Positions 1 to 64,000 of a stretch of 64,000 nt of DNA are shown here, in pieces (within the stretch, counting starts at the first letter, position 1; every line of letters starts with the position of its first letter). The position numbers were made by a program, and so were the translations under genes. Source of the stretch: Auanema rhodensis (Eukaryota; Animalia; Nematoda); assembly GCA_964057225.1 (NCBI GenBank), contig OZ059898.1, positions 9,672,001 through 9,736,000 on the forward strand, written 5' to 3'. The notes beneath the pieces are model-generated. The model saw nothing but the letters and a program-made list of their open reading frames with translations. It searched no databases and was not told the origin of the DNA.

Positions 1-15
1 AAGTCAAGTTCTACT
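1..15 (-). other. End of the 5' flank of a further tRNA cassette lying just left of the window
   Basis: The window opens with aagtcaagttctact, which elsewhere occurs only ~37-51 bp beyond a tRNA 5' end. Confidence 0.85.
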
Positions 16-758
16 GATTTGAAGAGAATTGTAAGTTTTAGAAAATAATTAAAAATTAGTTCTCTCTACTATTAACTGATTGTCGGCTAAAATATGGTAA
101 CAATTTTCATAAAAAGTTTCCATGATTAGGATTAAACAAAAAAAAGAATTAAAGAGAAACACTTTTTGTTTACTAATTTGATTATAATACTTGAAATTCC
201 AAAAACAGTTGAATAAAATTGAGAAAGCGACAAAAACAGTTGAACGATTTGAAGAGAATTGTAAGTTTTAGAAAAGAATTAAAGTTCAGCTATCTCTACT
301 ATTAACTGATTATCGGCTGAAATATGGTGACAGTTTTTTTTTAAAAGTTTCCATGATTAAGATTAAACAAAGAAAAAAAATCAAAGAGAAACACTTCTTG
401 TTTACTAATTTGATTATAACACTTAAAATTCCAACAAAAGTAAAGTAAAACTGTCAAAGCGAGTAAAACTGTTGAACAATTTGAAGACAATTGTAAGTTG
501 AAGAAAAAAATTAAAGTTCAGCTATCTCTACTATTAACTGATTATCGGCTGAAATATGGTGACAGTTTTTTTTTAAAAGTTTCCATGATTAAGATTAAAC
601 AAAGAAAAAAATCAAAGAGAAACACTTCTTGTTTACTAATTTGATTATAACACTTGAAAATCCAACAAAAGTAAAATAAAACTGTGAAAGCGGGTAAAAC
701 TGTTGAACTTAAACAGTCTTTATAAAATATAAATGATATATTTTTATAAAAGTGAAGT

Positions 759-804
759 TGCATCGGCGTGGCAGGCGAGCATTCTACCACTGAACCACCG
801 ATGC
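759..804 (-). pseudogene. tRNA-Gly(GCC) delta-25 copy (lacks most of the 3' anticodon stem, the variable loop and the T-arm/B-box)
   Basis: 46 bp: tgcatcggc^gtggcaggcgagcattctaccactgaaccaccgatgc, missing cgggaatcgaacccgggtcgcccgc. Confidence 0.9.
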
Positions 805-1361: not shown

Positions 1362-1368
1362 GTGAAGT

Positions 1369-2914: not shown

Positions 2915-3709
2915 TTCGAAAATGTTAGATTGTTTCCGAAAAATTATGAAAAGTCAAGTTCTACTGATTTGAAGAGAATTGTAAGTTTTAGAAAATAATT
3001 AAAAATTAGTTCTCTCTACTATTAACTGATTGTCGGCTAAAATATGGTAACAATTTTCATAAAAAGTTTCCATGATTAGGATTAAACAAAAAAAAGAATT
3101 AAAGAGAAACACTTTTTGTTTACTAATTTGATTATAATACTTGAAATTCCAAAAACAGTTGAATAAAATTGAGAAAGCGACAAAAACAGTTGAACGATTT
3201 GAAGAGAATTGTAAGTTTTAGAAAAGAATTAAAGTTCAGCTATCTCTACTATTAACTGATTATCGGCTGAAATATGGTGACAGTTTTTTTTTAAAAGTTT
3301 CCATGATTAAGATTAAACAAAGAAAAAAAATCAAAGAGAAACACTTCTTGTTTACTAATTTGATTATAACACTTAAAATTCCAACAAAAGTAAAGTAAAA
3401 CTGTCAAAGCGAGTAAAACTGTTGAACAATTTGAAGACAATTGTAAGTTGAAGAAAAAAATTAAAGTTCAGCTATCTCTACTATTAACTGATTATCGGCT
3501 GAAATATGGTGACAGTTTTTTTTTAAAAGTTTCCATGATTAAGATTAAACAAAGAAAAAAAATCAAAGAGAAACACTTCTTGTTTACTAATTTGATTATA
3601 ACACTTGAAATTCCAACAAAAGTAAAATAAAACTGTGAAAGCGGGTAAAACTGTTAAACTAAAACAGTCTTAATAAAATATAAATGATATTTTTTTATAA
3701 AAGTGAAGT

Positions 3710-3780
3710 TGCATCGGCCGGGAATCGAACCCGGGTCGCCCGCGTGGCAGGCGAGCATTCTACCACTGAACCACCGATGC
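3710..3780 (-). tRNA. tRNA-Gly(GCC), intact
   Basis: Minus strand GCATCGG TG GTTC AGTGGTA GAAT G CTCGC CTGCCAC GCGGG CGAC CCGGG TTCGATT CCCGG CCGATGC A; A box TGGTTCAGTGG, B box GGTTCGATTCC, anticodon GCC, no encoded CCA. Confidence 0.97.
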
Positions 3781-4805
3781 TTCGAAAATGTTAGATTGTT
3801 ACCGAAAAATCATGAAAAGTCAAGTTCTACTGATTTGAAGAGAATTGTAAGTTTCAGAAAATAATTAAAAATAAGTTTTCTCTACTATTAACTGATTATC
3901 GGCTGAAATAAGGTAACAGTTTTTATTGAAAGTTTCCATGATTAAGATTAAACAAAAAAAAAGGATCAAAAAGAAACACTTCTTGTTTACTTACTTGATT
4001 ATAATACTTGAAATTCCAAAAACAGTAGAACAAAATAGAGAAAACGACAAAAACAGTTGAACGATTTGAAGACAATTGTAAGTTTTAGAAAATAATTAAA
4101 AATTAGTTCTCTCTACTATTAACTGATTGTCGGCTAAAATATGGTAACAGTTTTTATAAAAAGGTTCCATGATTAGGATTAAACAAAGAAAAAAATCAAA
4201 GAGAAACACTTCTTGTTTACTTACTTGATTATAATACTTGAAATTCCAAAAACAGTGAAATAAAATTGAGAAAGCGACATAAACAGTTGAACGATTTGAA
4301 GACAATTGTAAGTTGAAGAAAAAAATTAACGTTTAGCTCTCTCTACTATTAACTGATTATCGGCTAAAATAAGGTAACAGTTTTTATTGAAAGTTTCCAT
4401 GATTAAGATTAAACAAAGAAAAAAATCAAAGAGAAACACTTCTTGTTTACTTACTTGATTATAATACTTGAAATTCCAAAAACAGTAAAATAAAATTGAG
4501 AAAGCGACAAAAACAGTTGAACGATTTGAAGACAATTGTAAGTTTAAGAAAAGAATTAAAGTTTAGCTTTGTCTACTATTAACTGATTATCGGCTGAAAT
4601 ATGATGACAGTTTTTTTTTAAAAGTTTCCATGATTAAGATTAAACAAAGAAAAAAAAATCAAAGAGAAACACTTCTTGTTTACTAATTTGATTATAACAC
4701 TTGAAAATCCAACCAAAGTAAAAAAAAACTGTGAAAGCGGGTAAAACTGTTGAACTAAAACAGTCTTTATAAAATATAAATGATATTTTTTTATAAAAGT
4801 GAAGT

Positions 4806-4876
4806 TGCATCGGCCGGGAATCGAACACGGGTCGCCCGCGTGGCAGGCGAGCATTCTACCACTGAACCACCGATGC
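4806..4876 (-). tRNA. tRNA-Gly(GCC), T-stem variant G52>T
   Basis: Full length; gaacacggg. Confidence 0.88.
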
Positions 4877-6591
4877 TTCGAAAATGTTAGATTGTTTCCG
4901 AAAAATTATGAAAAGTCAAGTTCTACTGATTTGAAGAGAATTGTAAGTTTTAGAAAATAATTAAAAATTAGTTCTCTCTACTATTAACTGATTGTCGGCT
5001 AAAATATGGTAACAGTTTTTATAAAAAGTTTCCATGATTAGGATTAAACAAAAAAAGAATTAAAGAGAAACACTTTTTGTTTACTTATTTGATTATAATA
5101 CTTGAAATTCCAAAAACAGTAGAATAAAATTGAGAAAGCGACAAAAACAGTTGAACGATTTGAAGAGAATTGTAAGTTTTAGAAAAGAATTAAAGTTCAG
5201 CTATCTCTACTATTAACTGATTATCGGCTAAAATAAGGTAACAGTTTTTATTGAAAGTTTCCATGATTGAGATTAAACAAAGAAAAAAATCAAAGAGAAA
5301 CACTTCTTGTTTACTTACTTGATTATAATACTTGAAATTCCAAAAACAGTAAAATAAAATTGAGAAAGCGACAAAAACAGTTGAACGATTTGAAGACAAT
5401 TGTAAGTTTAAGAAAAGAATTAAAGTTTAGCTTTGTCTACTATTAACTGATTATCGGCTGAAATATGGTGACAGTTTTTTTTTAAAAGTTTCCATGATTA
5501 AGATTAAACAAAGAAAAAAAAATCAAAGAGAAACACTTCTTGTTTACTAATTTGATCATAACACTTGAAATGCCAACAAAAGTAAAGTAAAACTGTTTAA
5601 GCGAGTAAAACTGTTGAACAATTTGAAGACAATTGTAAGTTGAAGAAAAAAATTAAAGTTTTGCTCTCTCTACTATTAACTGAATGTCGGCTGAAATATG
5701 GTAACAGTTTTTATCAAAAGTTTCCATGATTAAGATTAAACAAAGAAAAAAAATCAAAAAGAAACACTTCTTGTTTACTTACTTGATTATAATACTTGAA
5801 ATTCCAAAAACAGTAGAATAAAATAGAGAAAACGACAAAAACAGTTGAACGATTTGAAGACAATTGTAAGTTTTAGAAAATAATTAAAAATTAGTTCTCT
5901 CTACTATTAACTGATTGTCGGCTAAAATATGGTAACAGTTTTTATAAAAAGGTTCCATGATGAGGACTAAACAAAAAAAAGAATCAAAAAGAAACACTTC
6001 TTGTTTACTTACTTGATTATAATACTTGAAATTCAAAAAAAAGTGAAAAACAATTGAGAAAGCGACATAAACAGTTGAACGATTTGAAGAGAATTGTAAG
6101 TTTCAGAAAAGAATTAAAGTTCAGCTATCTCTACTATTAACTGATTATCGGCTAAAATAAGGTAACAGTTTTTATTGAAAGTTTCCATGATTAAGATTAA
6201 ACAAAGAAAAAAATCAAAGAGAAACACTTCTTGTTTACTTACTTGATTATAATACTTGAAATTTCAAAAACAGTAAAATAAAATTGAGAAAGCGACAAAA
6301 ACAGTTGAACGATTTGAAGACAATTGTAAGTTTAAGAAAAGAATTAAAGTTCAGCTATCTCTACTTTCAACTGATTAACGGCTAAAATATAGTAACAGTT
6401 TTTATTAAAAGTTTCCATGATTAAGATTAAACAAAGAAAAAAAATCAAAGAGAAACACTTCTTGTTTACTAATTTGATTATAACACTTGAAAATCCAACA
6501 AAAGTAAAATAAAACTGTGAAAGCGGGTAAAACTGTTGAACTTAAACAGTCTTTATAAAATATAAATGATATATTTTTATAAAAGTGAAGT

Positions 6592-6637
6592 TGCATCGGC
6601 GTGGCAGGCGAGCATTCTACCACTGAACCACCGATGC
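6592..6637 (-). pseudogene. tRNA-Gly(GCC) delta-25 copy
   Basis: Deletion junction tgcatcggcgtggc. Confidence 0.9.
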
Positions 6638-7662
6638 TTCGAAAATGTTAGATTGTTTCCGAAAAATTATGAAAAGTCAAGTTCTACTGATTTGAAGAGA
6701 ATTGTAAGTTTTAGAAAATAATTAAAAATTAGTTCTCTCTACTATTAACTGATTGTCGGCTAAAATATGGTAACAGTTTTTATCAAACGTTTCCATGATT
6801 AAGATTAAACAAAGAAAAAAAATCAAAAAGAAACACTTCTTGTTTACTTACTTGATTATAATACTTGAAATTCCAAAAACAGTAGAATAAAATAGAGAAA
6901 ACGACAAAAACAGTTGAACGATTTGAAGACAATTGTAAGTTTTAGAAAATAATTAAAAATTAGTTCTCTCTACTATTAACTGATTGTCGGCTAAAATATG
7001 GTAACAGTTTTTATAAAAAGGTTCCATGATTAGGACTAAACAAAAAAAAGAATCAAAAAGAAACACTTCTTGTTTACTTACTTGATTATAATACTTGAAA
7101 TTCAAAAAAAAGTAAAAAACAATTGAGAAAGCGACATAAACAGTTGAACGATTTAAAGAGAATTGTAAGTTTCAGAAAAGAATTAAAGTTCAGCTATCTC
7201 TACTATTAACTGATTATCGGCTAAAATAAGGTAACAGTTTTTATTGAAAGTTTCCATGATTAAGATTAAACAAAGAAAAAAATCAAAGAGAAACACTTCT
7301 TGTTTACTTACTTGATTATAATACTTGAAATTTCAAAAACAGTAAAATAAAATTGGGAAAGCGACAAAAACAGTTGAACGATTTGAAGACAATTGTAAGT
7401 TTAAGAAAAGAATTAAAGTTTAGCTTTGTCTACTATTAACTGATTATCGGCTGAAATATGGTGACAGTTTTTTTTTAAAAGTTTCCATGATTAAGATTAA
7501 ACAAAGAAAAAAAAATTAAAGAGAAACATTTCTTGTTTACTAATTTGATTATAACACTTGAAAATCCAACAAAAGTAAAAAAAAACTGTGAAAGCGGGTA
7601 AAACTGTTGAACTAAAACAGTCTTTATAAAATATAAATGATATTTTTTTATAAAAGTGAAGT

Positions 7663-7733
7663 TGCATCGGCCGGGAATCGAACCCGGGTCGCCCGCGTGG
7701 CAGGCGAGCATTCTACCACTGAACCACCGATGC
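7663..7733 (-). tRNA. tRNA-Gly(GCC), intact
   Basis: Identical to the 71-nt consensus. Confidence 0.97.
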
Positions 7734-9452
7734 TTCGAAAATGTTAGATTGTTTCCGAAAAATTATGAAAAGTCAAGTTCTACTGATTTGAAGAGAATTG
7801 TAAGTTTTAGAAAATAATTAAAAATTAGTTCTCTCTACTATTAACTGATTGTCGGCTAAAATATGGTAACAGTTTTTATAAAAAGTTTCCATGATTAGGA
7901 TTAAACAAAAAAAAAGAATTAAAGAGAAACACTTTTTGTTTACTTATTTGATTATAATACTTGAAATTCCAAAAACAGTAGAATAAAATTGAGAAAGCGA
8001 CAAAAACAGTTGAACGATTTGAAGAGAATTGTAAGTTTTAGAAAAGAATTAAAGTTTAGCTTTGTCTACTATTAACTGATTATCAGCTGAAATATGGTGA
8101 CAGTTTTTTTTTAAAAGTTTCCATGATTAAGATTAAACAAAGAAAAAAAATCAAAGAGAAACACTTCTTGTTTACTTACTTGATTATAATACTTGAAATT
8201 TCAAAAACAGTAAAATAAAATTGGGAAAGCGACAAAAACAGTTGAACGATTTGAAGACAATTGTAAGTTTAAGAAAAGAATTAAAGTTTAGCTTTGTCTA
8301 CTATTAACTGATTATCGGCTGAAATATGGTGACAGTTTTTTTTTAAAAGTTTCCATGATTAAGATTAAACAAAGAAAAAAAATCAAAGAGAAACACTTCT
8401 TGTTTACTAATTTGATCATAACACTTGAAATGCCAACAAAAGTAAAGTAAAACTGTTAAAGCGAGTAAAACTGTTGAACAATATGAAGACAATTGTAAGT
8501 TTTAGAAAATAATTAAAAATTAGTTCTCTCTACTATTAACTGATTGTCGGCTAAAATATGGTAACAGTTTTAATAAAAAGTTTCCATGATTAGGATTAAA
8601 CAAAAAAAAGAATTAAAGAGAAACACTTTTTGTTTACTTATTTGATTATAATACTTGAAATTCCAAAAACAGTAGAATAAAATAGAGAAAACGACAAAAA
8701 CAGTTGAACGATTTGAAGACAATTGTAAGTTTTAGAAAATAATTAAAAATTAGTTCTCTCTACTATTAACTGATTGTCGGCTAAAATATGGTAACAGTTT
8801 TTATAAAAAGGTTCCATGATTAGGACTAAACAAAAAAAAGAATCAAAAAGAAACACTTCTTGTTTACTTACTTGATTATAATACTTGAAATTCAAAAAAA
8901 AGTAAAAAACAATTGAGAAAGCGACATAAACAGTTGAACGATTTGAAGAGAATTGTAAGTTTCAGAAAAGAATTAAAGTTCAGCTATCTCTACTTTTAAC
9001 TGATTAACGACTAAAATAAGGTAACAGTTTTTATTGAAAATTTCCGTGATTGAGATTAAACAAAGAAAAAAAAATCAAAGAGAAACACTTCTTGTTTACT
9101 TATTTGATTATAATACTTGAAATTCCAAAAACAATAAAATAAAACTGTTAAAGCGAGTAAAACTGTTGAACGATTTGAAGACAATTGTAAGTTGAAGAAA
9201 AAAATTAAAGTTCAGCTATCTCTACTTTCAACTGATTAACGGCTAAAATATAATAACAGTTTTTATTAAAAGTTTCCATGATTAAGATTAAACAAAGAAA
9301 AAAAATCAAAGAGAAACACTTCTTGTTTACTAATTTGATTATAACACTTGAAAATCCAACAAAAGTAAAATGAAACTGTGAAAGCGGGTAAAACTGTTGA
9401 ACTAAAACAGTCTTTATAAAATATAAATGATATATTTTTATAAAAGTGAAGT

Positions 9453-9498
9453 TGCATCGGCGTGGCAGGCGAGCATTCTACCACTGAACCACCGATGC
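9453..9498 (-). pseudogene. tRNA-Gly(GCC) delta-25 copy
   Basis: Deletion junction tgcatcggcgtggc. Confidence 0.9.
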
Positions 9499-11213
9499 TT
9501 CGAAAATGTTAGATTGTTTCCGAAAAATTATGAAAAGTCAAGTTCTACTGATTTGAAGAGAATTGTAAGTTTTAGAAAATAATTAAAAATTAGTTCTCTC
9601 TACTATTAACTGATTGTCGGCTAAAATATGGTAACAGTTTTTATCAAAAGTTTCCATGATTAAGATTAAACAAAGAAAAAAAATCAAAAAGAAACACTTC
9701 TTGTTTACTTACTTGATTATAATACTTGAAATTCCAAAAACAGTAGAATAAAATAGAGAAAACGACAAAAACAGTTGAACGATTTGAAGACAATTGTAAG
9801 TTTTAGAAAATAATTAAAAATTAGTTCACTCTACTATTAACTGATTGTCGGCTAAAATATGGTAACAGTTTTTATAAAAAGGTTTCATGATTAGGACTAA
9901 ACAAAAAAAAGAATCAAAAAGAAACACTTCTTGTTTACTTACTTGATTATAATACTTGAAATTCAAAAAAAAGTAAAAAACAATTGAGAAAGCGACATAA
10001 ACAGTTGAACGATTTGAAGAGAATTGTAAGTTTCAGAAAAGAATTAAAGTTCAGCTATCTCTACTTTTAACTGATTAACGGCTAAAATAAGGTAACAGTT
10101 TTTATTGAAAGTTTCCGTGATTGAGATTAAACAAAGAAAAAAAAATCAAAGAGAAACACTTCTTGTTTACTTATTTGATTATAACACTTGAAATTCCAAC
10201 AAAAGTAAAGTAAAACTGTTAAAGCGAGTAAAACTGTTGAACGATTTGAAGACAATTGTAAGTTTTAGAAAATAATTAAAAATTAGTTCTCTCTACTATT
10301 AACTGATTGTCGGCTAAAATATGGTAACAGTTTTTATAAAAAGTTTCCATGATTAGGATTAAACAAAAAAAAGAATTAAAGAGAAACACTTTTTGTTTAC
10401 TTATTTGATTATAATACTTGAAATTCCAAAAACAGTAGAATAAAATTGAGAAAGCGACAAAAACAGTTGAACGATTTGAAGAGAATTGTAAGTTTCAGAA
10501 AATAATTAAAAATTAGTTCTCTCTACTATTAACTGATTGTCGGCTAAAATATGGTAACAGTTTTTATAAAAAGTTTCCATGATTAGGATTAAACAAAAAA
10601 AAGAATTAAAGAGAAACACTTTTTGTTTACTTATTTGATTATAATACTTGAAATTCCAAAAACAGTAGAATAAAATTGAGAAAGCGACAAAAACAGTTGA
10701 ACGATTTGAAGAGAATTGTAAGTTTTAGAAAAGAATTAAAGTTCAGCTTTCTCTACTATTAACTGATTATCGGCTAAAATAAGGTAACAGTTTTTATTGA
10801 AAGTTTCCATGATTAAGATTAAACAAAGAAAAAAATCAAAGAGAAACACTTCTTGTTTACTTATTTGATTATAACACTTGAAATTCCAACAAAAGTAAAG
10901 TAAAACTGTTAAAGCGAGTAAAACTGTTGAACGATTTGAAGACAATTGTAAGTTTTAGAAAATAATTAAAGTTCAGCTATCTCTACTTTCAACTGATTAA
11001 CGGCTAAAATATAATAACAGTTTTTATTAAAAGTTTCCATGATTAAGATTAAACAAAGAAAAAAAATCAAAGAGAAACACTTCTTGTTTACTAATTTGAT
11101 TATAACACTTGAAAATCCAACAAAAGTAAAATGAAACTGTGAAAGCGGGTAAAACTGTTGAACTAAAACAGTCTTTATAAAATATAAATGATATATTTTT
11201 ATAAAAGTGAAGT

Positions 11214-11259
11214 TGCATCGGCGTGGCAGGCGAGCATTCTACCACTGAACCACCGATGC
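11214..11259 (-). pseudogene. tRNA-Gly(GCC) delta-25 copy
   Basis: Deletion junction tgcatcggcgtggc. Confidence 0.9.
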
Positions 11260-14200: not shown

Positions 14201-14595
14201 AAAGAAAGAAAAAAAAATCAAAGAGAAACACTTCTTGTTTACTTATTTGATTATAACACTTGAAATTCCAACAAAAGTAAAGTAAAACTGTTAAAGCGAG
14301 TAAAACTGTTGAACGATTTGAAGACAATTGTAAGTTGAAGAAAAAAATTAAAGTTCAGCTATCTCTACTTTCAACTGATTAACGGCTAAAATATAGTAAC
14401 AGTTTTCATTAAAAGTTTCCATGATTAAGATTAAACAAAGAAAAAAAATCAGAGAGAAACACTTCTTGTATACTAATTTGATTATAACACTTGAAAATCC
14501 AACAAAAGTAAAATAAAACTGTGAAAGCGGGTAAAACTGTTGAACTAAAACAGTCTTTATAAAATATAAATGATATATTTTTATAAAAGTGAAGT

Positions 14596-14641
14596 TGCAT
14601 CGGCGTGGCAGGCGAGCATTCTACCACTGAACCACCGATGC
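14596..14641 (-). pseudogene. tRNA-Gly(GCC) delta-25 copy
   Basis: Deletion junction tgcatcggcgtggc. Confidence 0.9.
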
Positions 14642-15438: not shown

Positions 15439-15509
15439 TGCATCGGCCGGGAATCGAACCCGGGTCGCCCGCGTGGCAGGCGAGCATTCTACCACTGAAC
15501 CACCGATGC
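15439..15509 (-). tRNA. tRNA-Gly(GCC), intact
   Basis: Identical to the 71-nt consensus. Confidence 0.97.
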
Positions 15510-49832: not shown

Positions 49833-49903
49833 TGCATCGGCCGGGAATCGAACCCGGGTCGCCCGCGTGGCAGGCGAGCATTCTACCACTGAACCACCGA
49901 TGC
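49833..49903 (-). tRNA. tRNA-Gly(GCC), intact
   Basis: Identical to the 71-nt consensus. Confidence 0.97.
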
Positions 49904-52900: not shown

Positions 52901-54620
52901 TGAAATTCCAACAAAAGTAAAGTAAAACTGTTAAAGCGAGTAAAACTGTTGAACGATTTGAAGACAATTGTCAGTTGAAGAAAAAAATTAAAGTTTAGCT
53001 CTCTCTACTATTAACTGATTATCGGCTAAAATATAGTAACAGTTTTTATTAAAAGTTTCCATGATTAAGATTAAACAAGGAAAAAAAATCAAAGAAAAAC
53101 ACTTCTTGTTTACTAATTTGATCATAACACTTGAAATGCCAACAAAAGTAAAGTAAAACTGTTAAAGCGAGTAAAACTGTTGAACAATTTGAAGACAATT
53201 GTAAGTTGAAGAAAAAAATTAAAGTTTAGCTCTCTCTACTATTACCTGAATGTCGGCTAAAATATGGTAACAGTTTTAATAAAAAGTTTCCATGATTAGG
53301 ATTAAACAAAAAAAAGAATTAAAGAGAAACACTTTTTGTTTACTTATTTGATTATAATACTTGAAATTCCAAAAACAGTAAAATAAAATTGAGAAAGCGA
53401 CAAAAACAGTTGAACGATTTGAAGACAATTGTAAGTTTAAGAAAAGAATTAAAGTTTAGCTTTGTCTACTATTAACTGATTATCGGCTGAAATATGGTGA
53501 CAGTTTTTTTTTAAAAGTTTTCATGATTAGGATTAAACAAAAAAAAGAATCAAAAAGAAACACTTCTTGTTTACTTATTTGATTATAATACTTGAAATTT
53601 CAAAAACAGTAGAATAAAATTGAGAAAGCGACAAAAACAGTTGAACGATTTGAAGAGAATTGTAAGTTTTAGAAAAGAATTAAAGTTTAGCTCTCTCTAC
53701 TATTAACTGATTATCGGCTAAAATATAGTAACAGTTTTTATTAAAAGTTTCCATGATTAAGATTAAACAAAGAAAAAAAATCAAAGAAAAACACTTCTTG
53801 TTTACTAATTTGATCATAACACTTGAAATGCCAACAAAAGTAAAGTAAAACTGTTAAAGCGAGTAAAACTGTTGAACAATTTGAAGACAATTGTAAGTTG
53901 AAGAAAAAAATTAAAGTTTAGCTCTCTCTACTATTAACTGAATGTCGGCTAAAATATGGTAACAGTTTTTATCAAAAGTTTCCATGATTAAGATTAAACA
54001 AAGAAAAAAAATCAAAAAGAAACACTTCTTGTTTACTTACTTGATTATAATACTTGAAATTCCAAAAACAGTAGAATAAAATAGAGAAAACGACAAAAAC
54101 AGTTGAACGATTTGAAGACAATTGTAAGTTTTAGAAAATAATTAAAAATTAGTTCTCTCTACTATTAACTGATTGTCGGCTAAAATATGGTAACAGTTTT
54201 TATAAAAAGGTTCCATGATTAGGACTAAACAAAAAAAAGAATCAAAAAGAAACACTTCTTGTTTACTTACTTGATTATAATACTTGAAATTCAAAAAAAA
54301 GTAAAAAACAATTGAGAAAGCGACATAAACAGTTGAACGATTTGAAGAGAATTGTAAGTTTCAGAAAAGAATTAAAGTTCAGCTATCTCTACTTTTAACT
54401 GATTAACGGCTAAAATAAGGTAACAGTTTTTATTGAAAGTTTCCGTGATTGAGATTAAACAAAGAAAAAAAAATCAAAGAGAAACACTTCTTGTTTACTT
54501 ATTTGATTATAACACTTGAAAATCCAACAAAAGTAAAATAAAACTGTGAAAGCGGGTAAAACTGTTGAACTAAAACAGTCTTTATAAAATATAAATGATA
54601 TATTTTTATAAAAGTGAAGT

Positions 54621-54691
54621 TGCATCGGCCGGGAATCGAACCCGGGTCACCCGCGTGGCAGGCGAGCATTCTACCACTGAACCACCGATGC
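54621..54691 (-). tRNA. tRNA-Gly(GCC), variable-loop variant (CGAC>TGAC)
   Basis: Plus strand gggtcacccgc (position 54649); stems intact. Confidence 0.94.
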
Positions 54692-55719
54692 TTCGAAAAT
54701 GTTAGATTGTTTCCGAAAAATTATGAAAAGTCAAGTTCTACTGATTTGAAGAGAATTGTAAGTTTTAGAAAATAATTAAAAATTAGTTCTCTCTACTATT
54801 AACTGATTAACGGCTAAAATAAGGTAACAGTTTTTATTGAAAGTTTCCGTGATTGAGATAACACAAAGAAAAAAAAATCAAAGAGAAACACTTCCTTCTT
54901 GTTTACTTATTTGATTATAACACTTGAAATTCCAACAAAAGTAAAGTAAAACTGTTAAAGCGAGTAAAACTGTTGAACGATTTGAAGAGAATTGTAAGTT
55001 TTAGAAAAGAATTAAAGTTTAGCTTTGTCTACTATTAACTGATTATCGGCTGAAATATGGTGACAGTTTTTTTTTAAAAGTTTTCATGATTAGGATTAAA
55101 CAAAAAAAAGAATCAAAAAGAAACACTTCTTGTTTACTTATTTGATTATAATACTTGAAATTCCAAAAACAGTAGAATAAAATTGAGAAAGCGACAAAAA
55201 CAGTTGAACGATTTGAAGAGAATTGTAAGTTTTAGAAAATAATTAAAAATTAGTTCTCTCTACTACTAACTGATTGTCGGCTAAAATATGGTAACAGTTT
55301 TTATAAAAAGTTTCCATGATTAGGATTAAACAAAAAAAGAATTAAAGAGAAACACTTTTTGTTTACTTATTTGATTATAATACTTGAAATTCCAAAAACA
55401 GTAGAATAAAATTGAGAAAGCGACAAAAACAGTTGAACGATTTGAAGAGAATTGTAAGTTTTAGAAAAGAATTAAAGTTCAGCTTTCTCTACTATTAACT
55501 GATTATCGGCTAAAATAAGGTAACAGTTTTTATTGAAAGTTTCCATGATTAAGATTAAACAAAGAAAAAAATCAAAGAGAAACACTTCTTGTTTACTAAT
55601 TTGATTATAACACTTGAAAATCCAACAAAAGTAAAAAAAAAACTGTGAAAGCGGGTAAAACTGTTGAACTATAACAGTCTTTATAAAATATAAATGATAT
55701 TTTTTTATAAAAGTGAAGT

Positions 55720-55790
55720 TGCATCGGCCGGGAATCGAACCCGGGTCGCCCGCGTGGCAGGCGAGCATTCTACCACTGAACCACCGATGC
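55720..55790 (-). tRNA. tRNA-Gly(GCC), intact
   Basis: Identical to the 71-nt consensus. Confidence 0.97.
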
Positions 55791-56353
55791 TTCGAAAATG
55801 TTAGATTGTTTCCGAAAAATTATGAAAAGTCAAGTTCTACTGATTTGAAGAGAATTGTAAGTTTTAGAAAATAATTAAAAATTAGTTCTCTCTACTATTA
55901 ACTGATTGTCGGCTAAAATATGGTAACAGTTTTTATAAAAAGGTTCCATGATTAGGACTAAACAAAAAAAAGAATCAAAAAGAAACACTTCTTGTTTACT
56001 TACTTGATTATAATACTTGAAATTCAAAAAAAAGTAAAAAACAATTGAGAAAGCGACATAAACAGTTGAACGATTTGAAGAGAATTGTAAGTTTCAGAAA
56101 AGAATTAAAGTTCAGCTATCTCTACTTTTAACTGATTAACGGCTAAAATAAGGTAACAGTTTTTATTGAAAGTTTCCGTGATTGAGATTAAACAAAGAAA
56201 AAAAAATCAAAGAGAAACACTTCTTGTTTACTTATTTGATTATAACACTTGAAAATCCAACAAAAGTAAAATAAAACTGTGAAAGCGGGTAAAACTGTTG
56301 AACTAAAACAGTCTTTATAAAATATAAATGATATATTTTTATAAAAGTGAAGT

Positions 56354-56424
56354 TGCATCGGCCGGGAATCGAACCCGGGTCACCCGCGTGGCAGGCGAGC
56401 ATTCTACCACTGAACCACCGATGC
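56354..56424 (-). tRNA. tRNA-Gly(GCC), variable-loop variant (CGAC>TGAC)
   Basis: Plus strand gggtcacccgc (position 56382). Confidence 0.94.
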
Positions 56425-57452
56425 TTCGAAAATGTTAGATTGTTTCCGAAAAATTATGAAAAGTCAAGTTCTACTGATTTGAAGAGAATTGTAAGTTTTA
56501 GAAAATAATTAAAAATTAGTTCTCTCTACTATTAACTGATTAACGGCTAAAATAAGGTAACAGTTTTTATTGAAAGTTTCCGTGATTGAGATAACACAAA
56601 GAAAAAAAAATCAAAGAGAAACACTTCCTTCTTGTTTACTTATTTGATTATAACACTTGAAATTCCAACAAAAGTAAAGTAAAACTGTTAAAGCGAGTAA
56701 AACTGTTGAACGATTTGAAGAGAATTGTAAGTTTTAGAAAAGAATTAAAGTTTAGCTTTGTCTACTATTAACTGATTATCGGCTGAAATATGGTGACAGT
56801 TTTTTTTTAAAAGTTTTCATGATTAGGATTAAACAAAAAAAAGAATCAAAAAGAAACACTTCTTGTTTACTTATTTGATTATAATACTTGAAATTCCAAA
56901 AACAGTAGAATAAAATTGAGAAAGCGACAAAAACAGTTGAACGATTTGAAGAGAATTGTAAGTTTTAGAAAATAATTAAAAATTAGTTCTCTCTACTACT
57001 AACTGATTGTCGGCTAAAATATGGTAACAGTTTTTATAAAAAGTTTCCATGATTAGGATTAAACAAAAAAAGAATTAAAGAGAAACACTTTTTGTTTACT
57101 TATTTGATTATAATACTTGAAATTCCAAAAACAGTAGAATAAAATTGAGAAAGCGACAAAAACAGTTGAACGATTTGAAGAGAATTGTAAGTTTTAGAAA
57201 AGAATTAAAGTTCAGCTTTCTCTACTATTAACTGATTATCGGCTAAAATAAGGTAACAGTTTTTATTGAAAGTTTCCATGATTAAGATTAAACAAAGAAA
57301 AAAATCAAAGAGAAACACTTCTTGTTTACTAATTTGATTATAACACTTGAAAATCCAACAAAAGTAAAAAAAAAACTGTGAAAGCGGGTAAAACTGTTGA
57401 ACTATAACAGTCTTTATAAAATATAAATGATATTTTTTTATAAAAGTGAAGT

Positions 57453-57523
57453 TGCATCGGCCGGGAATCGAACCCGGGTCGCCCGCGTGGCAGGCGAGCA
57501 TTCTACCACTGAACCACCGATGC
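57453..57523 (-). tRNA. tRNA-Gly(GCC), intact
   Basis: Identical to the 71-nt consensus. Confidence 0.97.
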
Positions 57524-58087
57524 TTCGAAAATGTTAGATTGTTTCCGAAAAATTATGAAAAGTCAAGTTCTACTGATTTGAAGAGAATTGTAAGTTTTAG
57601 AAAATAATTAAAAATTAGTTCTCTCTACTATTAACTGATTGTCGGCTAAAATATGGTAACAGTTTTAATAAAAAGTTTCCATGATTAGGATTAAACAAAA
57701 AAAAAGAATTAAAGAGAAACACTTTTTGTTTACTTACTTGATTATAATACTTGAAATTCAAAAAAAAGTAAAAAACAATTGAGAAAGCGACATAAACAGT
57801 TGAACGATTTGAAGAGAATTGTAAGTTTCAGAAAAGAATTAAAGTTCAGCTATCTCTACTTTTAACTGATTAACGGCTAAAATAAGGTAACAGTTTTTAT
57901 TGAAAGTTTCCGTGATTGAGATTAAACAAAGAAAAAAAAATCAAAGAGAAACACTTCTTGTTTACTTATTTGATTATAACACTTGAAAATCCAACAAAAG
58001 TAAAATAAAACTGTGAAAGCGGGTAAAACTGTTGAACTAAAACAGTCTTTATAAAATATAAATGATATATTTTTATAAAAGTGAAGT

Positions 58088-58158
58088 TGCATCGGCCGGG
58101 AATCGAACCCGGGTCGCCCGCGTGGCAGGCGAGCATTCTACCACTGAACCACCGATGC
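58088..58158 (-). tRNA. tRNA-Gly(GCC), intact
   Basis: Identical to the 71-nt consensus. Confidence 0.97.
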
Positions 58159-59619
58159 TTCGAAAATGTTAGATTGTTTCCGAAAAATTATGAAAAGTCA
58201 AGTTCTACTGATTTGAAGAGAATTGTAAGTTTTAGAAAATAATTAAAAATTAGTTCTCTCTACTATTTACTGATTGTCAGCTATAATATGGTAACAGTTT
58301 TTATAAAAAGTTTCCATGATTAGGATTAAACAAAAAAAAGAATTAAAGAGAAACACTTTTTGTTTACTTATTTGATTATAATACTTGAATTTCCAAAAAC
58401 AGTAGAATAAAATTGAGAAAGCGACAAAAACAGTTGAACGATTTGAAGAGAATTGTAAGTTTTAGAAAAGAATTAAAGTTCAGCTATCTCTACTATTAAC
58501 TGATTAACGGCTAAAATAAGGTAACAGTTTTTATTGAAAGTTTCCGTGATTGAGATAACACAAAGAAAAAAAAATCAAAGAGAAACACTTCCTTCTTGTT
58601 TACTTATTTGATTATAACACTTGAAATTCCAACAAAAGTAAAGTAAAACTGTTAAAGCGAGTAAAACTGTTGAACGATTTGAAGAGAATTGTAAGTTTTA
58701 GAAAAGAATTAAAGTTTAGCTTTGTCTACTATTAACTGATTATCGGCTGAAATATGGTGACAGTTTTTTTTTAAAAGTTTTCATGATTAGGATTAAACAA
58801 AAAAAAGAATCAAAAAGAAACACTTCTTGTTTACTTATTTGATTATAATACTTGAAATTCCAAAAACAGTAGAATAAAATTGAGAAAGCGACAAAAACAG
58901 TTGAACGATTTGAAGAGAATTGTAAGTTTTAGAAAATAATTAAAGTTCAGCTATCTCTACTTTTAACTGATTAACGGCTAAAATAAGGTAACAGTTTTTA
59001 TTGAAAGTTTCCGTGATTGAGATTAAACAAAGAAAAAAAATCAAAGAAAAACACTTCTTGTTTACTAATTTGATCATAACACTTGAAATGCCAACAAAAG
59101 TAAAGTAAAACTGTTAAAGCGAGTAAAACTGTTGAACAATTTGAAGACAATTGTAAGTTTAAGAAAAGAATTAAAGTTTAGCTTTGTCTACTATTAACTG
59201 AATGTCGGCTAAAATATGGTAACAGTTTTTATCAAAAGTTTCCATGATTAAGATTAAACAAAGAAAAAAAATCAAAAAGAAACACTTCTTGTTTACTTAC
59301 TTGATTATAATACTTGAAATTCCAAAAACAGTAGAATAAAATTGAGAAAGCGACAAAAACAGTTGAACGATTTGAAGAGAATTGTAAGTTGAAGAAAAAA
59401 TTAAAGTTTAGCTCTCTCTACTATTAACTGAATGTCGGCTAAAATATAGTAACAGTTTTTATTAAAAGTTTCCATGATTAGGACTAAACAAAAAAAAGAA
59501 TCAAAAAGAAACACTTCTTGTTTACTTACTTGATTATAATACTTGAAATTCAAAAAAAAGTAAAAAACAATTGAGAAAGCGACATAAACAGTTGAACGAT
59601 TTGAAGAGAATTGTAAGTT

Positions 59620-62600
59620 TTAGAAAAGAATTAAAGTTCAGCTATCTCTACTATTAACTGACTATCGGCTAAAATAAGGTAACAGTTTTTATTGAAAGTT
59701 TCCATGGTTAAGATTAAACAAAGAAAAAAATCAGAGAGAAACACTTCTTGTTTACTTACTTGATTATAATACTTGAAATGCCAACAAAAGTAAAGTAAAA
59801 CTGTTAAAGCGAGTAAAACTGTTGAACAATTTGAAGACAATTGTAAGTTGAAGAAAAAAATTAAAGTTTAGCTTTGTCTACTATTAACTGAATGTCGGCT
59901 AAAATATGGTAACAGTTTTTATCAAAAGTTTCCATGATTAAGATTAAACAAAGAAAAAAATCAGAGAGAAACACTTCTTGTTTACTTACTTGATTATAAT
60001 ACTTGAAATTCCAAAAACAGTAAAATAAAATTGAGAAAGCGACAAAAACAGTTGAACGATTTGAAGACAATTGTAAGTTTTAGAAAATAATTAAAAATTA
60101 GTTCTCTCTACTATTAACTGATTGTCGGCTAAAATATAGTAACAGTTTTTATTAAAAGTTTCCATGATTAAGATTAAACAAAGAAAAAAATCAGAGAGAA
60201 ACACTTCTTGTTTACTTACTTGATTATAATACTTGAAATTCCAAAAACAGTAGAATAAAATTGAGAAAGCGACAAAAACAGTTGAACGATTTGAAGAGAA
60301 TTGTAAGTTGAAGAAAAAAATTAAAGTTTAGCTCTCTCTACTATTAACTGAATGTCGGCTAAAATATAGTAACAGTTTTTATTAAAAGTTTCCATGATTA
60401 AGATTAAACAAAGAAAAAAATCAGAGAGAAACACTTCTTGTTTACTTACTTGATTATAATACTTGAAATTCCAAAAACAGTAAAATAAAATTGAGAAAGC
60501 GACAAAAACAGTTGAACGATTTGAAGACAATTGTAAGTTTTAGAAAATAATTAAAAATTAGTTCTCTCTACTATTAACTGATTGTCGGCTAAAATATGGT
60601 AACAGTTTTTATAAAAAGGTTCCATGATTAGGACTAAACAAAAAAAAGAATCAAAAAGAAACACTTCTTGTTTACTTACTTGATTATAATACTTGAAATT
60701 CCAAAAACAGTAGAATAAAATAGAGAAAACGACAAAAACAGTTGAACGATTTGAAGACAATTGTAAGTTTTAGAAAATAATTAAAAATTAGTTCTCTCTA
60801 CTATTAACTGATTGTCGGCTAAAATATGGTAACAGTTTTTATAAAAAGGTTCCATGATTAGGACTAAACAAAAAAAAGAATCAAAAAGAAACACTTCTTG
60901 TTTACTTACTTGATTATAATACTTGAAATTCAAAAAAAAGTAAAAAACAATTGAGAAAGCGACATAAACAGTTGAACGATTTGAAGAGAATTGTAAGTTT
61001 CAGAAAAGAATTAAAGTTCAGCTATCTCTACTTTTAACTGATTAACGGCTAAAATAAGGTAACAGTTTTTATTGAAAGTTTCCGTGATTGAGATTAAACA
61101 AAGAAAAAAAAATCAAAGAGAAACACTTCTTGTTTACTTATTTGATTATAACACTTGAAAATCCAACAAAAGTAAAATAAAACTGTGAAAGCGGGTAAAA
61201 CTGTTGAACTAAAACAGTCTTCATAAAATATAAATGATATATTTTTATAAAAGTGAAGTTGCATCGGCCGGGAATCGAACCCGGGTCGCCCGCGTGGCAG
61301 GCGAGCATTCTACCACTGAACCACCGATGCTTCGAAAATGTTAGATTGTTTCCGAAAAATTATGAAAAGTCAAGTTCTACTGATTTGAAGAGAATTGTAA
61401 GTTTTAGAAAATAATTAAAAATTAGTTCTCTCTACTATTTACTGATTGTCAGCTAAAATATGGTAACAGTTTTTATAAAAAGTTTCCATGATTAGGATTA
61501 AACAAAAAAAAGAATTAAAGAGAAACACTTTTTGTTTACTTATTTGATTATAATACTTGAATTTCCAAAAACAGTAGAATAAAATTGAGAAAGCGACAAA
61601 AACAGTTGAACGATTTGAAGAGAATTGTAAGTTTTAGAAAAGAATTAAAGTTCAGCTATCTCTACTATTAACTGATTAACGGCTAAAATAAGGTAACAGT
61701 TTTTATTGAAAGTTTCCGTGATTGAGATAACACAAAGAAAAAAAAATCAAAGAGAAACACTTCCTTCTTGTTTACTTATTTGATTATAACACTTGAAATT
61801 CCAACAAAACTAAAGTAAAACTGTTAAAGCGAGTAAAACTGTTGAACGATTTGGAGACAATTGTAAGTTTAAGAAAAGAATTAAAGTTTAGCTTTGTCTA
61901 CTATTAACTGATTATCGGCTGAAATATGGTGACAGTTTTTTTTTAAAAGTTTTCATGATTAGGATTAAACAAAAAAAAGAATCAAAAAGAAACACTTCTT
62001 GTTTACTTATTTGATTATAATACTTGAAATTCCAAAAACAGTAGAATAAAATTGAGAAAGCGACAAAAACAGTTGAACGATTTGAAGAGAATTGTAAGTT
62101 TTAGAAAATAATTAAAAATTAGTTCTCTCTACTATTAACTGATTGTCGGCTAAAATATGGTAACAGTTTTTATAAAAAGTTTCCATGATTAGGATTAAAC
62201 AAAAAAAAGAATTAAAGAGAAACACTTTTTGTTTACTTATTTGATTATAATACTTGAAATTCCAAAAACAGTAGAATAAAATTGAGAAAGCGACAAAAAC
62301 AGTTGAACGATTTGAAGAGAATTGTAAGTTTTAGAAAATAATTAAAAATTAGTTCTCTCTACTATTAACTGATTGTCGGCTAAAATATGGTAACAGTTTT
62401 TATAAAAAGGTTCCATGATTAGGACTAAACAAAAAAAAGAATCAAAAAGAAACACTTCTTGTTTACTTACTTGATTATAATACTTGAAATTCCAAAAACA
62501 GTAAAATAAAATTGAGAAAGCGACAAAAACAGTTGAACGATTTGAAGACAATTGTAAGTTTTAGAAAAGAATTAAAGTTCAGCTATCTCTACTATTAACT

Positions 62601-64000
62601 GACTATCGGCTAAAATAAGGTAACAGTTTTTATTGAAAGTTTCCATGATTAAGATTAAACAAAGAAAAAAATCAGAGAGAAACACTTCTTGTTTACTTAC
62701 TTGATTATAATACTTGAAATGCCAACAAAAGTAAAGTAAAACTGTTAAAGCGAGTAAAACTGTTGAACAATTTGAAGACAATTGTAAGTTTAAGAAAAGA
62801 ATTAAAGTTTAGCTTTGTCTACTATTAACTGAATGTCGGCTAAAATATGGTAACAGTTTTTATCAAAAGTTTCCATGATTAAGATTAAACAAAGAAAAAA
62901 AATCAAAAAGAAACACTTCTTGTTTACTTACTTGATTATAATACTTGAAATTCCAAAAACAGTAGAATAAAATTGAGAAAGCGACAAAAACAGTTGAACG
63001 ATTTGAAGAGAATTGTAAGTTGAAGAAAAAATTAAAGTTTAGCTCTCTCTACTATTAACTGAATGTCGGCTAAAATATAGTAACAGTTTTTATTAAAAGT
63101 TTCCATGATTAAGATTAAACAAAGAAAAAAAATCAAAGAAAAACACTTCTTGTTTACTAATTTGATCATAACACTTGAAATGCCAACAAAAGTAAAGTAA
63201 AACTGTTAAAGCGAGTAAAACTGTTGAACAATTTGAAGACAATTGTAAGTTGAAGAAAAAAATTAAAGTTTAGCTCTCTCTACTATTAACTGAATGTCGG
63301 CTAAAATATGGTAACAGTTTTTATCAAAAGTTTCCATGATTAAGATTGAACAAAGAAAAAAAATCAAAAAGAAACACTTCTTGTTTACTTACTTGATTAT
63401 AATACTTGAAATTCCAAAAACAGTAGAATAAAATAGAGAAAACGACAAAAACAGTTGAACGATTTGAAGACAATTGTAAGTTTTAGAAAATAATTAAAAA
63501 TTAGTTCTCTCTACTATTAACTGATTGTCGGCTAAAATATGGTAACAGTTTTTATAAAAAGGTTCCATGATTAGGACTAAACAAAAAAAAGAATCAAAAA
63601 GAAACACTTCTTGTTTACTTACTTGATTATAATACTTGAAATTCAAAAAAAAGTAAAAAACAATTGAGAAAGCGACATAAACAGTTGAAAGATTTGAAGA
63701 GAATTGTAAGTTTCAGAAAAGAATTAAAGTTCAGCTATCTCTACTTTTAACTGATTAACGGCTAAAATAAGGTAACAGTTTTTATTGAAAGTTTCCGTGA
63801 TTGAGATTAAACAAAAAAAAAAATCAAAGAGAAACACTTCTTGTTTACTTACTTGATTATAATACTTGAAATTCCAAAAACAGTAGAATAAAATAGAGAA
63901 AACGACAAAAACAGTTGAACGATTTGAAGACAATTGTAAGTTTTAGAAAATAATTAAAAATTAGTTCTCTCTACTATTAACTGATTGTCGGCTAAAATAT
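59620..64000. repeat. Non-adjacent copy of ~41850-46230 (offset 17773 bp)
   Basis: ORF pairs 41858/59631, 44569/62342 and 45951/63724 and tRNAs 43487/61260 are offset by 17773; private variant ttggagacaa at ~44080 and ~61853. Confidence 0.88.
61260..61330 (-). tRNA. tRNA-Gly(GCC), intact
   Basis: Identical to the 71-nt consensus. Confidence 0.97.

Follow-up and report, generated by a model that had tools for sequence, protein, structure and literature searches.

A tRNA-Gly(GCC) cassette at one fixed site of a chromosome-specific satellite array in Auanema rhodensis

The satellite array and its tRNA-Gly(GCC) cassettes

The window, i.e., the whole stretch of 64,000 nucleotides of Auanema rhodensis DNA analysed here (contig OZ059898.1, hereafter C6), is positioned 45% along C6 (21.64 Mb) and forms part of a satellite array of ~1 Mb. 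Its G+C content is 26% overall and remains at 0.25–0.28 all along. TRF returned periods of 229–233 and 460–464 bp over the entire window, and 79–96% of each 4-kb bin was covered by the monomer consensus. Monomers of types A, B, D, E, F, H and L were mapped in the window; the TRF periods, the monomer map and the repeating strings of monomer types identify this DNA as a satellite with higher-order repeats. Pairwise diversity was 0.03–0.055 inside monomer types and 0.107 across all monomers. A 264-kb portion of C6 contained 987 monomer matches, whilst a monomer 26-mer gave 2,880 matches which, among those listed, were located on C6 only, with none before C6:9,534,697. The original prediction had called for a TRF run and for a search for the monomer without tRNAs. 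By TRF, every spacer in the window was filled by 230–232-bp satellite (87–92% match), and the monomer does occur without tRNAs, in a 63-kb stretch at C6:9,534,643–9,597,951 that is made up of other monomer types than the cassette-bearing part. The assembly also holds TTAGGC arrays and SL1-like genes, which are marks of nematodes.

As the original prediction had claimed, 32 co-oriented tRNA-Gly(GCC) cassettes sit at one monomer position in the window, all on the minus strand; 22 are full-length and 10 carry an identical 25-bp deletion. ARAGORN identified 22 tRNA-Gly(GCC) genes, all on the minus strand, which scored 57–67.7 bits with the Rfam tRNA model RF00005 (cut-off 29), and the count of 32 was obtained by searching with the 39-nt 5' half of the tRNA. 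A cloverleaf with a GCC anticodon and a covariance-model match, as expected of a eukaryotic nuclear tRNA-Gly(GCC) gene (Pol III type 2), was found in 22/32 copies, the 10 deleted ones lacking it. The features are listed below by window position; unless other evidence is added, full-length cassettes were identified by ARAGORN and Rfam and deleted cassettes by the 5'-half search.

1–64000, no strand: AT-rich satellite of ~231 bp, unbroken save for 32 cassettes (TRF, G+C, monomer consensus)
709–855, minus: deleted cassette, 147 bp; tRNA remnant 759–804 (also hairpin fold, no T arm)
1319–1490, minus: cassette; tRNA 1369–1439, G50T, a T-stem/B-box mutation (Rfam 57 bits; cloverleaf lost in minimum-energy fold)
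2184–2330, minus: deleted cassette; remnant 2234–2279
2794–2965, minus: cassette; tRNA 2844–2914, G50T
3660–3831, minus: cassette; canonical tRNA 3710–3780 (Rfam 66.6 bits)
4756–4927, minus: cassette; tRNA 4806–4876, G50T
6542–6688, minus: deleted cassette; remnant 6592–6637
7613–7784, minus: cassette; canonical tRNA 7663–7733
9403–9549, minus: deleted cassette; remnant 9453–9498
11164–11310, minus: deleted cassette; remnant 11214–11259
14546–14692, minus: deleted cassette; remnant 14596–14641
15389–15560, minus: cassette; canonical tRNA 15439–15509
18789–18935, minus: deleted cassette; remnant 18839–18884
20781–20952, minus: cassette; canonical tRNA 20831–20901
22341–22512, minus: cassette; canonical tRNA 22391–22461
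24129–24275, minus: deleted cassette; remnant 24179–24224
24972–25143, minus: cassette; canonical tRNA 25022–25092
26532–26703, minus: cassette; tRNA 26582–26652, G1A, first acceptor pair broken (Rfam 60.4 bits)
28093–28264, minus: cassette; canonical tRNA 28143–28213
30112–30258, minus: deleted cassette; remnant 30162–30207
30955–31126, minus: cassette; canonical tRNA 31005–31075
34124–34270, minus: deleted cassette; remnant 34174–34219
37726–37897, minus: cassette; canonical tRNA 37776–37846 (also minimum-energy cloverleaf)
41826–64000, no strand: tandem block duplication of ~17.6 kb, first copy and start of second, with several cassettes (offset identity)
43437–43608, minus: cassette; canonical tRNA 43487–43557
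47305–47476, minus: cassette; canonical tRNA 47355–47425
49783–49954, minus: cassette; canonical tRNA 49833–49903
54571–54742, minus: cassette; tRNA 54621–54691, C43T in the variable loop, structure kept (Rfam 67.7 bits; also fold)
55670–55841, minus: cassette; canonical tRNA 55720–55790
56304–56475, minus: cassette; tRNA 56354–56424, C43T
57403–57574, minus: cassette; canonical tRNA 57453–57523
58038–58209, minus: cassette; canonical tRNA 58088–58158
61210–61381, minus: cassette; canonical tRNA 61260–61330

The cassette measures 172 bp (51 nt upstream, the 71-nt tRNA and 50 nt downstream) and its deleted form 147 bp; the 174 nt originally proposed was close, but the last 2 nt belong to the monomer. 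With the 25-bp deletion, both T arm and B box are lost. An A box, a B box and a downstream T4 run occur together in 19/32 copies in the window and in 74/110 copies in the 264 kb, so that the earlier statement that most genes keep these elements holds for a majority, but not for nearly all. In minimum-energy folds, a canonical copy forms a cloverleaf and a G50T copy does not; the variable-loop variant C43T retains the structure, and a deleted copy folds as a hairpin without T arm. Cassettes account for ~8% of the window sequence (hand calculation) and form islands of 66% G+C inside 26% G+C DNA.

The 31 intervals between cassettes in the window (635, 840, 635, 866, 1096, 1761 ... 3172 bp) span 634–5,711 bp and correspond to 2–24 whole monomers. 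All 31 monomer numbers of the original prediction were reproduced exactly, including its 25-bp correction after deleted copies. Both junctions were common to 110/110 cassettes in the 264 kb, within 1–2 mismatches, as was the orientation relative to the monomer. Spacers of less than two monomers were found in 0/96 intervals, where random placement would give ~27 (hand estimate). Given the junctions, the orientation and the absence of short spacers, the fixed-site pattern is not a matter of chance. On the 5' side of the tRNA, the adjoining monomer is of type A in 87/110 cassettes, and on the 3' side it is of type B or D in 107/110. The shared junctions and whole-monomer spacing bear out the view that a single isoacceptor gene is carried in a single fixed cassette.

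Copies, origin and spread of the cassette

The 5' flank of the cassette has 619 matches in the assembly, and all those listed are on C6. The array holds ~610 copies, with ~428 of ~606 (~70%) encoding the canonical tRNA. The mature sequence is that of the organism's ordinary genes, as a search with the 71-mer recovered 15 dispersed genes identical over 71/71 nt on C3, C4 and at C6:6.63 Mb. No similarity of the cassette flanks to the monomer was detected above shuffled controls (p 0.17–0.48), and neither a target-site duplication nor a tail was found at the cassette junctions. Pairwise diversity of the cassette was 0.009 in the tRNA and 0.011–0.028 in the flanks; by this lower diversity, the cassette appears young relative to the monomers. 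The satellite is probably older than the tRNA capture, with the cassette a putative foreign fragment. Since no locus was found from which the flanks could derive, we infer one non-homologous capture event from the uniform junctions only.

The original prediction had described a tRNA locus with an expanding satellite spacer. The data point rather to a chromosome-specific satellite, cassette-free over 63 kb, that would have captured a foreign fragment once. In the mechanism proposed here, this 172-bp piece, with its native tRNA-Gly(GCC) gene, would have inserted where a B/D-type monomer adjoins an A-type one, without target-site duplication. Not being self-mobile, the cassette would then have been copied passively together with neighbouring monomers, by the unequal exchange and block duplication that also build the higher-order repeats of the satellite, resulting in ~610 cassettes 2 to 24 whole monomers apart.

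Shared defects hold one position from one higher-order unit to the next, with G50T and a flank variant of 2 mismatches both reappearing at 4,443 or 4,905 bp, and the type string of a three-cassette unit occurs in five repeats at the same two distances. Blocks of 4.4–17.8 kb are 99.85–100% identical, and those of 7–9 kb to ~17.6 kb are 99.97–100% identical. Copies of the ~17.6-kb block are 99.97–99.99% identical at offsets of 17,773 and 17,542 bp, with offset-identity runs at C6:9,713,826–9,723,271 and 9,723,464–9,730,874, and identical 461-mers lie 17,773 bp apart in the window. Since spacers differ in length by integral numbers of monomers as well as by tandem units within them (e.g., BFH trimers, at offsets of 693–695 bp), tRNA copy number changes by satellite-style recombination, as had been proposed for tRNA dosage. 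Taken together, the data establish a single junction, the anatomy of the cassette, its block-wise spread and the existence of cassette-free satellite.

An insertion site that is the same in every copy would also be expected of a mobile tRNA-derived (SINE-like) element that had inserted many times, independently and site-specifically, into one satellite motif. The cassette, however, is an intact gene with unique flanks and lacks a target-site duplication, poly-A tail or element body; its variants are passed on in step with higher-order units and blocks, and all copies listed fall in one array region of C6. We consider such repeated insertion highly improbable. With neither duplication nor tail, one junction in 110/110 copies and inheritance in blocks, the cassette does not belong among tRNA-derived SINEs or retroposons.

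Misassembled repeats might likewise produce variable spacing. The near-identical blocks of 7–9 kb to ~17.6 kb pose a placement problem even for HiFi reads, and as the largest are near HiFi read length, exact copy numbers could be misassembled. Nevertheless, spacers differ in monomer-type composition as well as number, monomers are ~10% different and hence offer unique anchors for reads, and most HiFi reads are reported to map uniquely in the repeat blocks of this species (Gonzalez de la Rosa et al., bioRxiv 10.64898/2026.08.27.747507). An assembly artefact is thus barely credible as the source of the spacing.

Probable germline setting, selection and predicted transcription competence

The preprint describes a germline assembly of Auanema rhodense of 180.9 Mb, very probably the same as that used here, with 19,554 tRNA loci (Gonzalez de la Rosa et al., bioRxiv 10.64898/2026.08.27.747507). 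According to its text, central repeat blocks differ for every autosome, are kept in the germline and are eliminated from body cells, with a long-read depth of 29-fold for eliminated vs 236-fold for retained DNA, i.e., ~8-fold lower. Internal break sites are SFE palindromes flanking the central repeat block (chromosome 5 site, 16,502,174). Amongst the eliminated tandem repeats, some consist of arrayed ncRNA genes (5S, several tRNA loci and U2), and ncRNA density in eliminated repeats is <20% per 10 kb. C6 is probably chromosome 5 and, judging from the preprint's general description, the window probably lies in a central repeat block that is discarded from body cells.

Variable sites numbered 10 in the 71 nt of the tRNA vs ~17 in the 103 nt of the flanks (Fisher p 0.83; p 0.44 when corrected for G+C). 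Amongst the 10 tRNA sites, six break stems and two are in the T loop, with no compensatory change (hand assignment on the Rfam structure line), and broken copies have been amplified, with the deletion present in 15 copies and G50T in 16. Singleton variants were in excess in the tRNA (6/10 vs 3/17 in the flanks, p 0.04), which also has the lowest diversity of the cassette despite its 66% G+C; either mild constraint or gene conversion might account for these two features. Clear purifying selection on the array tRNA was not found with the 26 variable sites, which give low power. From these comparisons, we infer that the array is neutral. In canonical copies, promoter elements for Pol III inside the gene and the T4 terminator are retained, and these copies are therefore predicted to be transcribable in germ cells. 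On the best reading, the cassette is predicted to be a transcription-competent passenger gene. We hold it to be probable that, as a whole, the array stems from one capture by a chromosome-specific satellite followed by passive block copying, the cassettes being mainly passengers under weak or no copy-level selection.

It is also conceivable, although rather unlikely, that the array serves as a germline tRNA supply, with ~590 copies active in germ cells or early embryos that would raise dosage ~40-fold relative to the 15 dispersed genes and would be removed from body cells by elimination, an arrangement comparable to the oocyte-type 5S genes of Xenopus. The identity of the array tRNA to the dispersed genes, the predominance of canonical copies, the promoter boxes and T4 run intact in 74/110 copies, the cloverleaf fold of the canonical copy and the singleton excess are consistent with such a supply, as is the richness of eliminated DNA in 5S, tRNA and U2 arrays (bioRxiv 10.64898/2026.08.27.747507). 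Against this, the tRNA has the same variable-site density as its flanks, structure-breaking variants and a promoter-less deletion have been amplified to 15–16 copies, and a 63-kb satellite stretch persists without any cassette. The authors of the preprint themselves favour accumulation under weak selection (bioRxiv 10.64898/2026.08.27.747507).

A role in chromatin, with the G+C-rich tDNA islands binding TFIIIC/Pol III and acting as barriers or as condensin or pairing landmarks in the satellite, would fit the G+C contrast between cassettes and satellite and the chromosome specificity of the repeat, and in their discussion the authors of the preprint speculate that chromosome-specific central repeats help homologue pairing (bioRxiv 10.64898/2026.08.27.747507). 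However, the cassettes are irregularly scattered, absent from 63 kb and not at domain edges, and copies without a B box are tolerated, making this very unlikely. For a tDNA barrier, position alone argues against the idea, as cassettes are spread throughout the array. Rhabditid nematodes have holocentric chromosomes, and a regional centromere is therefore not expected. The centromeric function originally suggested fits poorly with this, with the probable germline restriction of the block and with the spread of cassettes through the array instead of at its edges; a centromere or barrier role is unsupported.

Comparison with known arrays and biological meaning

Xenopus oocyte-type 5S arrays comprise thousands of Pol III gene repeats, with a linked pseudogene and a spacer that is AT-rich, internally repetitive and variable in length. 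Their expression is proven and is limited to oocytes through transcription control, not DNA loss. The present array is similar in having a repeated Pol III gene and an AT-rich spacer of variable length. In Xenopus, however, the spacer is part of the gene unit and has no gene-free satellite form, whereas the satellite described here also exists gene-free. Entamoeba tRNA-STR arrays consist of regular units with several tRNA species, and in Schizosaccharomyces pombe, tDNAs mark the borders of heterochromatin at regional centromeres. The tRNA genes of Entamoeba are likewise tied to tandem repeats and those of S. pombe to heterochromatin, but here one isoacceptor is scattered inside the satellite of a holocentric nematode.

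With intervals of 634–5,711 bp and 2–24 monomers, the array does not conform to a regular tandem tRNA array of the Arabidopsis, Entamoeba or human 1q23.3 type. The Arabidopsis chromosome 1 array has 27 Ser-Tyr-Tyr units (PMC2886086) and the human 1q23.3 tRNA VNTR has 7.3-kb units (PMC4041453). Both resemble the present array in tandem tRNA multiplication by unequal exchange and variable copy number, but each is built of one regular gene-containing unit, whereas here the gene is an optional insert in an independent satellite. Arrays of tRNA genes in the eliminated repeats of Auanema rhodense are already known in outline; the main text of the preprint sets out the anatomy of none of them, and the fixed junction, whole-monomer spacing, presumed single capture, linked host monomers, shared deletions and cassette-free part are absent from it (bioRxiv 10.64898/2026.08.27.747507).

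The array would constitute a clean natural record of a satellite capturing a gene once and then multiplying it, complete with linked host monomers, a 635-bp minimal unit and block duplications up to ~17.6 kb. If its copies are silent passengers, it would be an ordinary, tidy by-product of satellite turnover in weakly selected DNA. What purpose germline-only DNA serves in animals that shed some of their genome is a general question, and here what is probably such DNA holds a gene of known function ~600 times. Transcription of the ~590 tRNA-Gly(GCC) genes of the satellite in germ cells or early embryos, by which elimination would come to switch the dosage of a Pol III gene, is doubtful; were it true, a 40-fold germline-only tRNA gene set would be physically lost from body cells at the ~12-cell stage, and the variant copies of the array would be built-in expression reporters. 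As the cassette has its own leader and trailer and part of the copies are marked by G50T, C43T or the 25-bp deletion, germline RNA or Pol III data could show whether eliminated satellite DNA is transcribed.

tRNA-Gly(GCC) cassettes within and beyond the window

Using ARAGORN, 22 tRNA-Gly(GCC) genes were predicted in the window, every one of them on the minus strand, and the same 22 were recovered by the Rfam tRNA model with scores of 57-67.7 bits (cut-off 29). When the initial 39 nt of the tRNA served as query, 32 copies were identified. In 10 of these 32, nucleotide 39 is joined straight to the last 7 nt, reflecting a single identical 25-bp deletion in which the T arm and B box are lost. The window thus contains 16 canonical cassettes (i.e., with a tRNA identical to the dispersed genes), three with G50T in the T stem, two with C43T, one with G1A and the 10 deleted copies; 19/32 retain an A box together with a B box and the T4 run. 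The 31 copy-to-copy intervals (635, 840, 635, 866, 1096 ... 3172 bp) exactly reproduced the numbers of monomers between cassettes listed in the original prediction. By TRF, every spacer in the window was shown to be filled by a 229-233-bp repeat, and G+C is uniformly 25-28%. The cassette, an insert at one junction between satellite monomers, comprises a 5' flank of 51 nt, the gene of 71 nt and a 3' flank of 50 nt; its length is thus 172 bp, two bases of the predicted 174 bp belonging to the monomer.

A contiguous stretch of 264 kb on contig C6 (9,532,001-9,796,000) was analyzed, while the array at 9.80-10.67 Mb is known from genome-wide match lists alone. The 264-kb stretch yielded 110 cassettes and 987 monomer matches. 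The main features of the array and its outlier are as follows.

Features of the satellite array on C6
C6:9,426,290-9,426,745: outlying array scrap, consisting of a cassette, one hybrid monomer and the next 5' flank
C6:9,534,643-9,597,951: 63 kb of the same satellite with zero cassettes
C6:9,597,952-9,607,185, minus strand: Bel/Pao-type retrovirus-like element of 9.2 kb, where the satellite lacks cassettes
C6:9,608,086-9,608,939: exact duplicate of the first 854 bp of the Bel/Pao element plus flank
C6:9,616,150-9,640,704: segment in which array orientation flips four times
C6:9,622,086-9,626,775 and 9,629,235-9,633,934: palindrome arms of 4.7 kb, 97.5% identical
C6:9,713,826-9,748,416: ~17.6-kb tandem duplicate (window 41,826-64,000 and beyond)

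Across the genome, a conserved 26-mer of the monomer had 2,880 matches and, among the matches listed, none lay before C6:9,534,697. Given that this 26-mer recovered 83% of monomers in the 264-kb stretch, the scaled estimate is ~3,460 monomers, or ~0.8 Mb. The cassette 5' flank occurred 619 times and, among the matches listed, always on C6. The full tRNA was found 607 times at ≤3 mismatches, with 444 exact copies. Outside the array, exact copies comprised 15 dispersed genes on C3, C4 and at C6:6.63 Mb, as well as one in the outlying fragment at C6:9.426 Mb; within the array, ~428 of ~606 copies are canonical. The 25-bp deletion was present in 15 copies genome-wide, all at 9.669-9.781 Mb. Searches of the monomer for another RNA family or ribozyme gave matches at chance level only. 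An ordinary cluster of 10 tRNA-Gly(GCC) genes, including triplets spaced 376-381 bp apart, was observed at C4:17,549,715-17,592,957; its genes have the same sequence as the array gene and were absent among the flank-pattern matches listed (0-2 mismatches).

Proposed capture of the cassette by the satellite

The original prediction proposed a tRNA locus whose spacer expands as a satellite, together with a genome-wide check for the monomer without tRNAs. That check was positive: as 63 kb of the array lack any cassette, the satellite exists without the gene. This stretch is built of monomer types (i.e., satellite subfamilies) C, G, I and J, which are rare where cassettes occur. The proposed order is consequently reversed, the satellite having preceded the gene.

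Both junctions were common to 110/110 cassettes of the 264-kb stretch within 1-2 mismatches, and the orientation of the cassette relative to the monomer was constant in all 110, inverted segments included. Derivation of the flanks from the monomer was considered and rejected, given that local alignments revealed no flank-monomer similarity above that of shuffled controls. Furthermore, no duplicated sequence was found at the cassette junctions. With uniform junctions and orientation, flanks unlike the monomer and junctions free of duplication, the sequence suggests that a gene fragment was captured once, by a non-homologous event, and that the cassette did not originate as a mobile element. As regards the source of the flanks, the 15 dispersed genes were not among the flank-pattern matches listed at 0-2 mismatches. 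The copy at C6:9.426 Mb was rejected as a source, as it is an array piece caught between retroelements: it is bordered by two retroelement ends, one of them 57 nt and the other 1 nt upstream of a tRNA position, and the right-hand element carries a Bel/Pao-type gag domain.

The 9.2-kb Bel/Pao element encodes gag-like DUF1759, A17 protease, reverse transcriptase and integrase zinc-binding domains, as well as a separate phlebovirus-G2-type envelope ORF, and has terminal repeats of 138 bp. Its insertion point is monomer position 131, which the 854-bp duplicate again follows. Within the terminal repeat (at ~C6:9,597,995, with a second occurrence at the opposite end of the element), an 18-nt stretch matches the first 18 nt of the local tRNA-Gly(GCC) at 17/18 positions; this stretch runs antisense to the ORFs of the element and lies off the expected location of a primer-binding site. 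At the centre of the palindrome lies a Ty3/gypsy-type pol fragment (reverse transcriptase, RNase H and integrase), with cassettes at mirror positions in the two arms. The use of retroelement insertion sites as a sign of Pol III activity was dropped, as there were too few events in 264 kb.

Chromosomal setting and comparison with known systems

The assembly comprises 180,911,798 bp in 112 contigs, with C6 accounting for 21,638,500 bp; the window corresponds to C6:9,672,001-9,736,000. In a 2026 preprint, Gonzalez de la Rosa et al. describe a germline assembly of 180.9 Mb for Auanema rhodense APS4, with 61% of the genome lost from body cells, including one central and two terminal repeat blocks per autosome, with the central-block repeats being autosome-specific (bioRxiv 10.64898/2026.08.27.747507). 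The same source reports 19,554 tRNA loci in the assembly, arrays of 5S, several tRNA loci and U2 among the eliminated tandem repeats, and a chromosome 5 break site at 16,502,174 (bioRxiv 10.64898/2026.08.27.747507). We infer that C6 corresponds to chromosome 5 and that the window lies within its central eliminated block.

TTAGGC repeat arrays gave 83 matches in the genome vs. none for the control; many short internal arrays, on both strands, were observed in a 0.6-Mb stretch (C8:26.31-26.93 Mb) and on the small contigs C72 and C104. At C3:6.74-7.10 Mb, SL1-like spliced-leader RNA genes form a large tandem array with spacings in multiples of ~252 bp; they score 54-62 bits, under the Rfam SL1 cut-off of 75 bits. 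Together, the TTAGGC and SL1-like arrays identify the genome as that of a nematode, and an insect source, initially suggested by the tRNA sequence, was accordingly rejected.

Xenopus oocyte 5S DNA has an AT-rich, variable and internally repetitive spacer, as does the Auanema array, and a germline link that the latter probably shares. The tandem tRNA arrays of Arabidopsis (PMC2886086) and of human 1q23.3 (PMC4041453) are likewise described as having grown by unequal exchange; unlike the A. rhodense array, each has a constant unit. Our literature searches for tRNA genes inside satellites revealed no described case of an optional cassette besides the brief statement in the Auanema preprint. The nearest prior description is that preprint, in which tRNA arrays are stated to be among the eliminated repeats, the main text giving no anatomy (bioRxiv 10.64898/2026.08.27.747507).

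Spread of the cassette and variation among its copies

The monomer located 5' of the tRNA was of type A in 87/110 cassettes, vs. an 18.5% share of this type among monomers, and that located 3' was of type B or D in 107/110. As cassettes are never separated by fewer than two monomers and are linked to A and B/D, the smallest unit is a cassette plus A plus B/D, i.e., 635 bp. Pairwise diversity was 0.009 for the tRNA, the lowest of all cassette parts, and 0.011-0.028 for the flanks, with values for monomers of 0.03-0.055 within types and 0.107 overall. The lower diversity of the cassette than that within monomer types indicates a cassette lineage of more recent origin than the monomer subfamilies.

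In register with higher-order units, steps of 4,443 or 4,905 bp separate successive occurrences of G50T and of a flank variant with two mismatches. Near-identical blocks in the array (99.85-100%) range from 1.7 kb to ~17.6 kb. In the largest, window 41,826-58,874 pairs with a downstream copy at 99.97-99.99% identity, with offsets of 17,773 and 17,542 bp that reflect one monomer-sized indel; as its size is close to HiFi read length, its copy number needs to be treated with caution. Spacers are also altered internally, for example by the gain or loss of BFH trimers (of monomer types B, F and H). Variants in register, duplicated blocks and internal spacer changes together uphold the original suggestion that tRNA number and density track satellite recombination.

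Judged by sequence, the canonical array copies have the features required for Pol III transcription. Among the 110 copies, 10 sites were variable in the 71 nt of the tRNA vs. ~17 in the 103 nt of the flanks (Fisher p 0.83). In the monomer, G/C columns had 1.65 times the diversity of A/T columns; after G+C adjustment, 10/26 variable sites were obtained for the tRNA vs. 47% expected (p 0.44). When the variant positions were assigned by hand against the Rfam structure line, six of the ten tRNA changes were stem-breaking, two fell in the T loop and two in the variable loop, with no compensatory change among them. G50T abolishes the cloverleaf in the predicted minimum-energy fold, yet is present in 16 copies, and the promoter-less 25-bp deletion was itself amplified to its 15 copies. 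Pointing the other way, singletons accounted for 6/10 tRNA variants vs. 3/17 flank variants (p 0.04), and the tRNA is the least diverse part of the cassette; this signal is weak among the 110 copies. How frequent a variant becomes in a tandem array mostly depends on which block got copied, and we conclude from these sequence comparisons that selection at the level of the individual copy is probably weak or absent.
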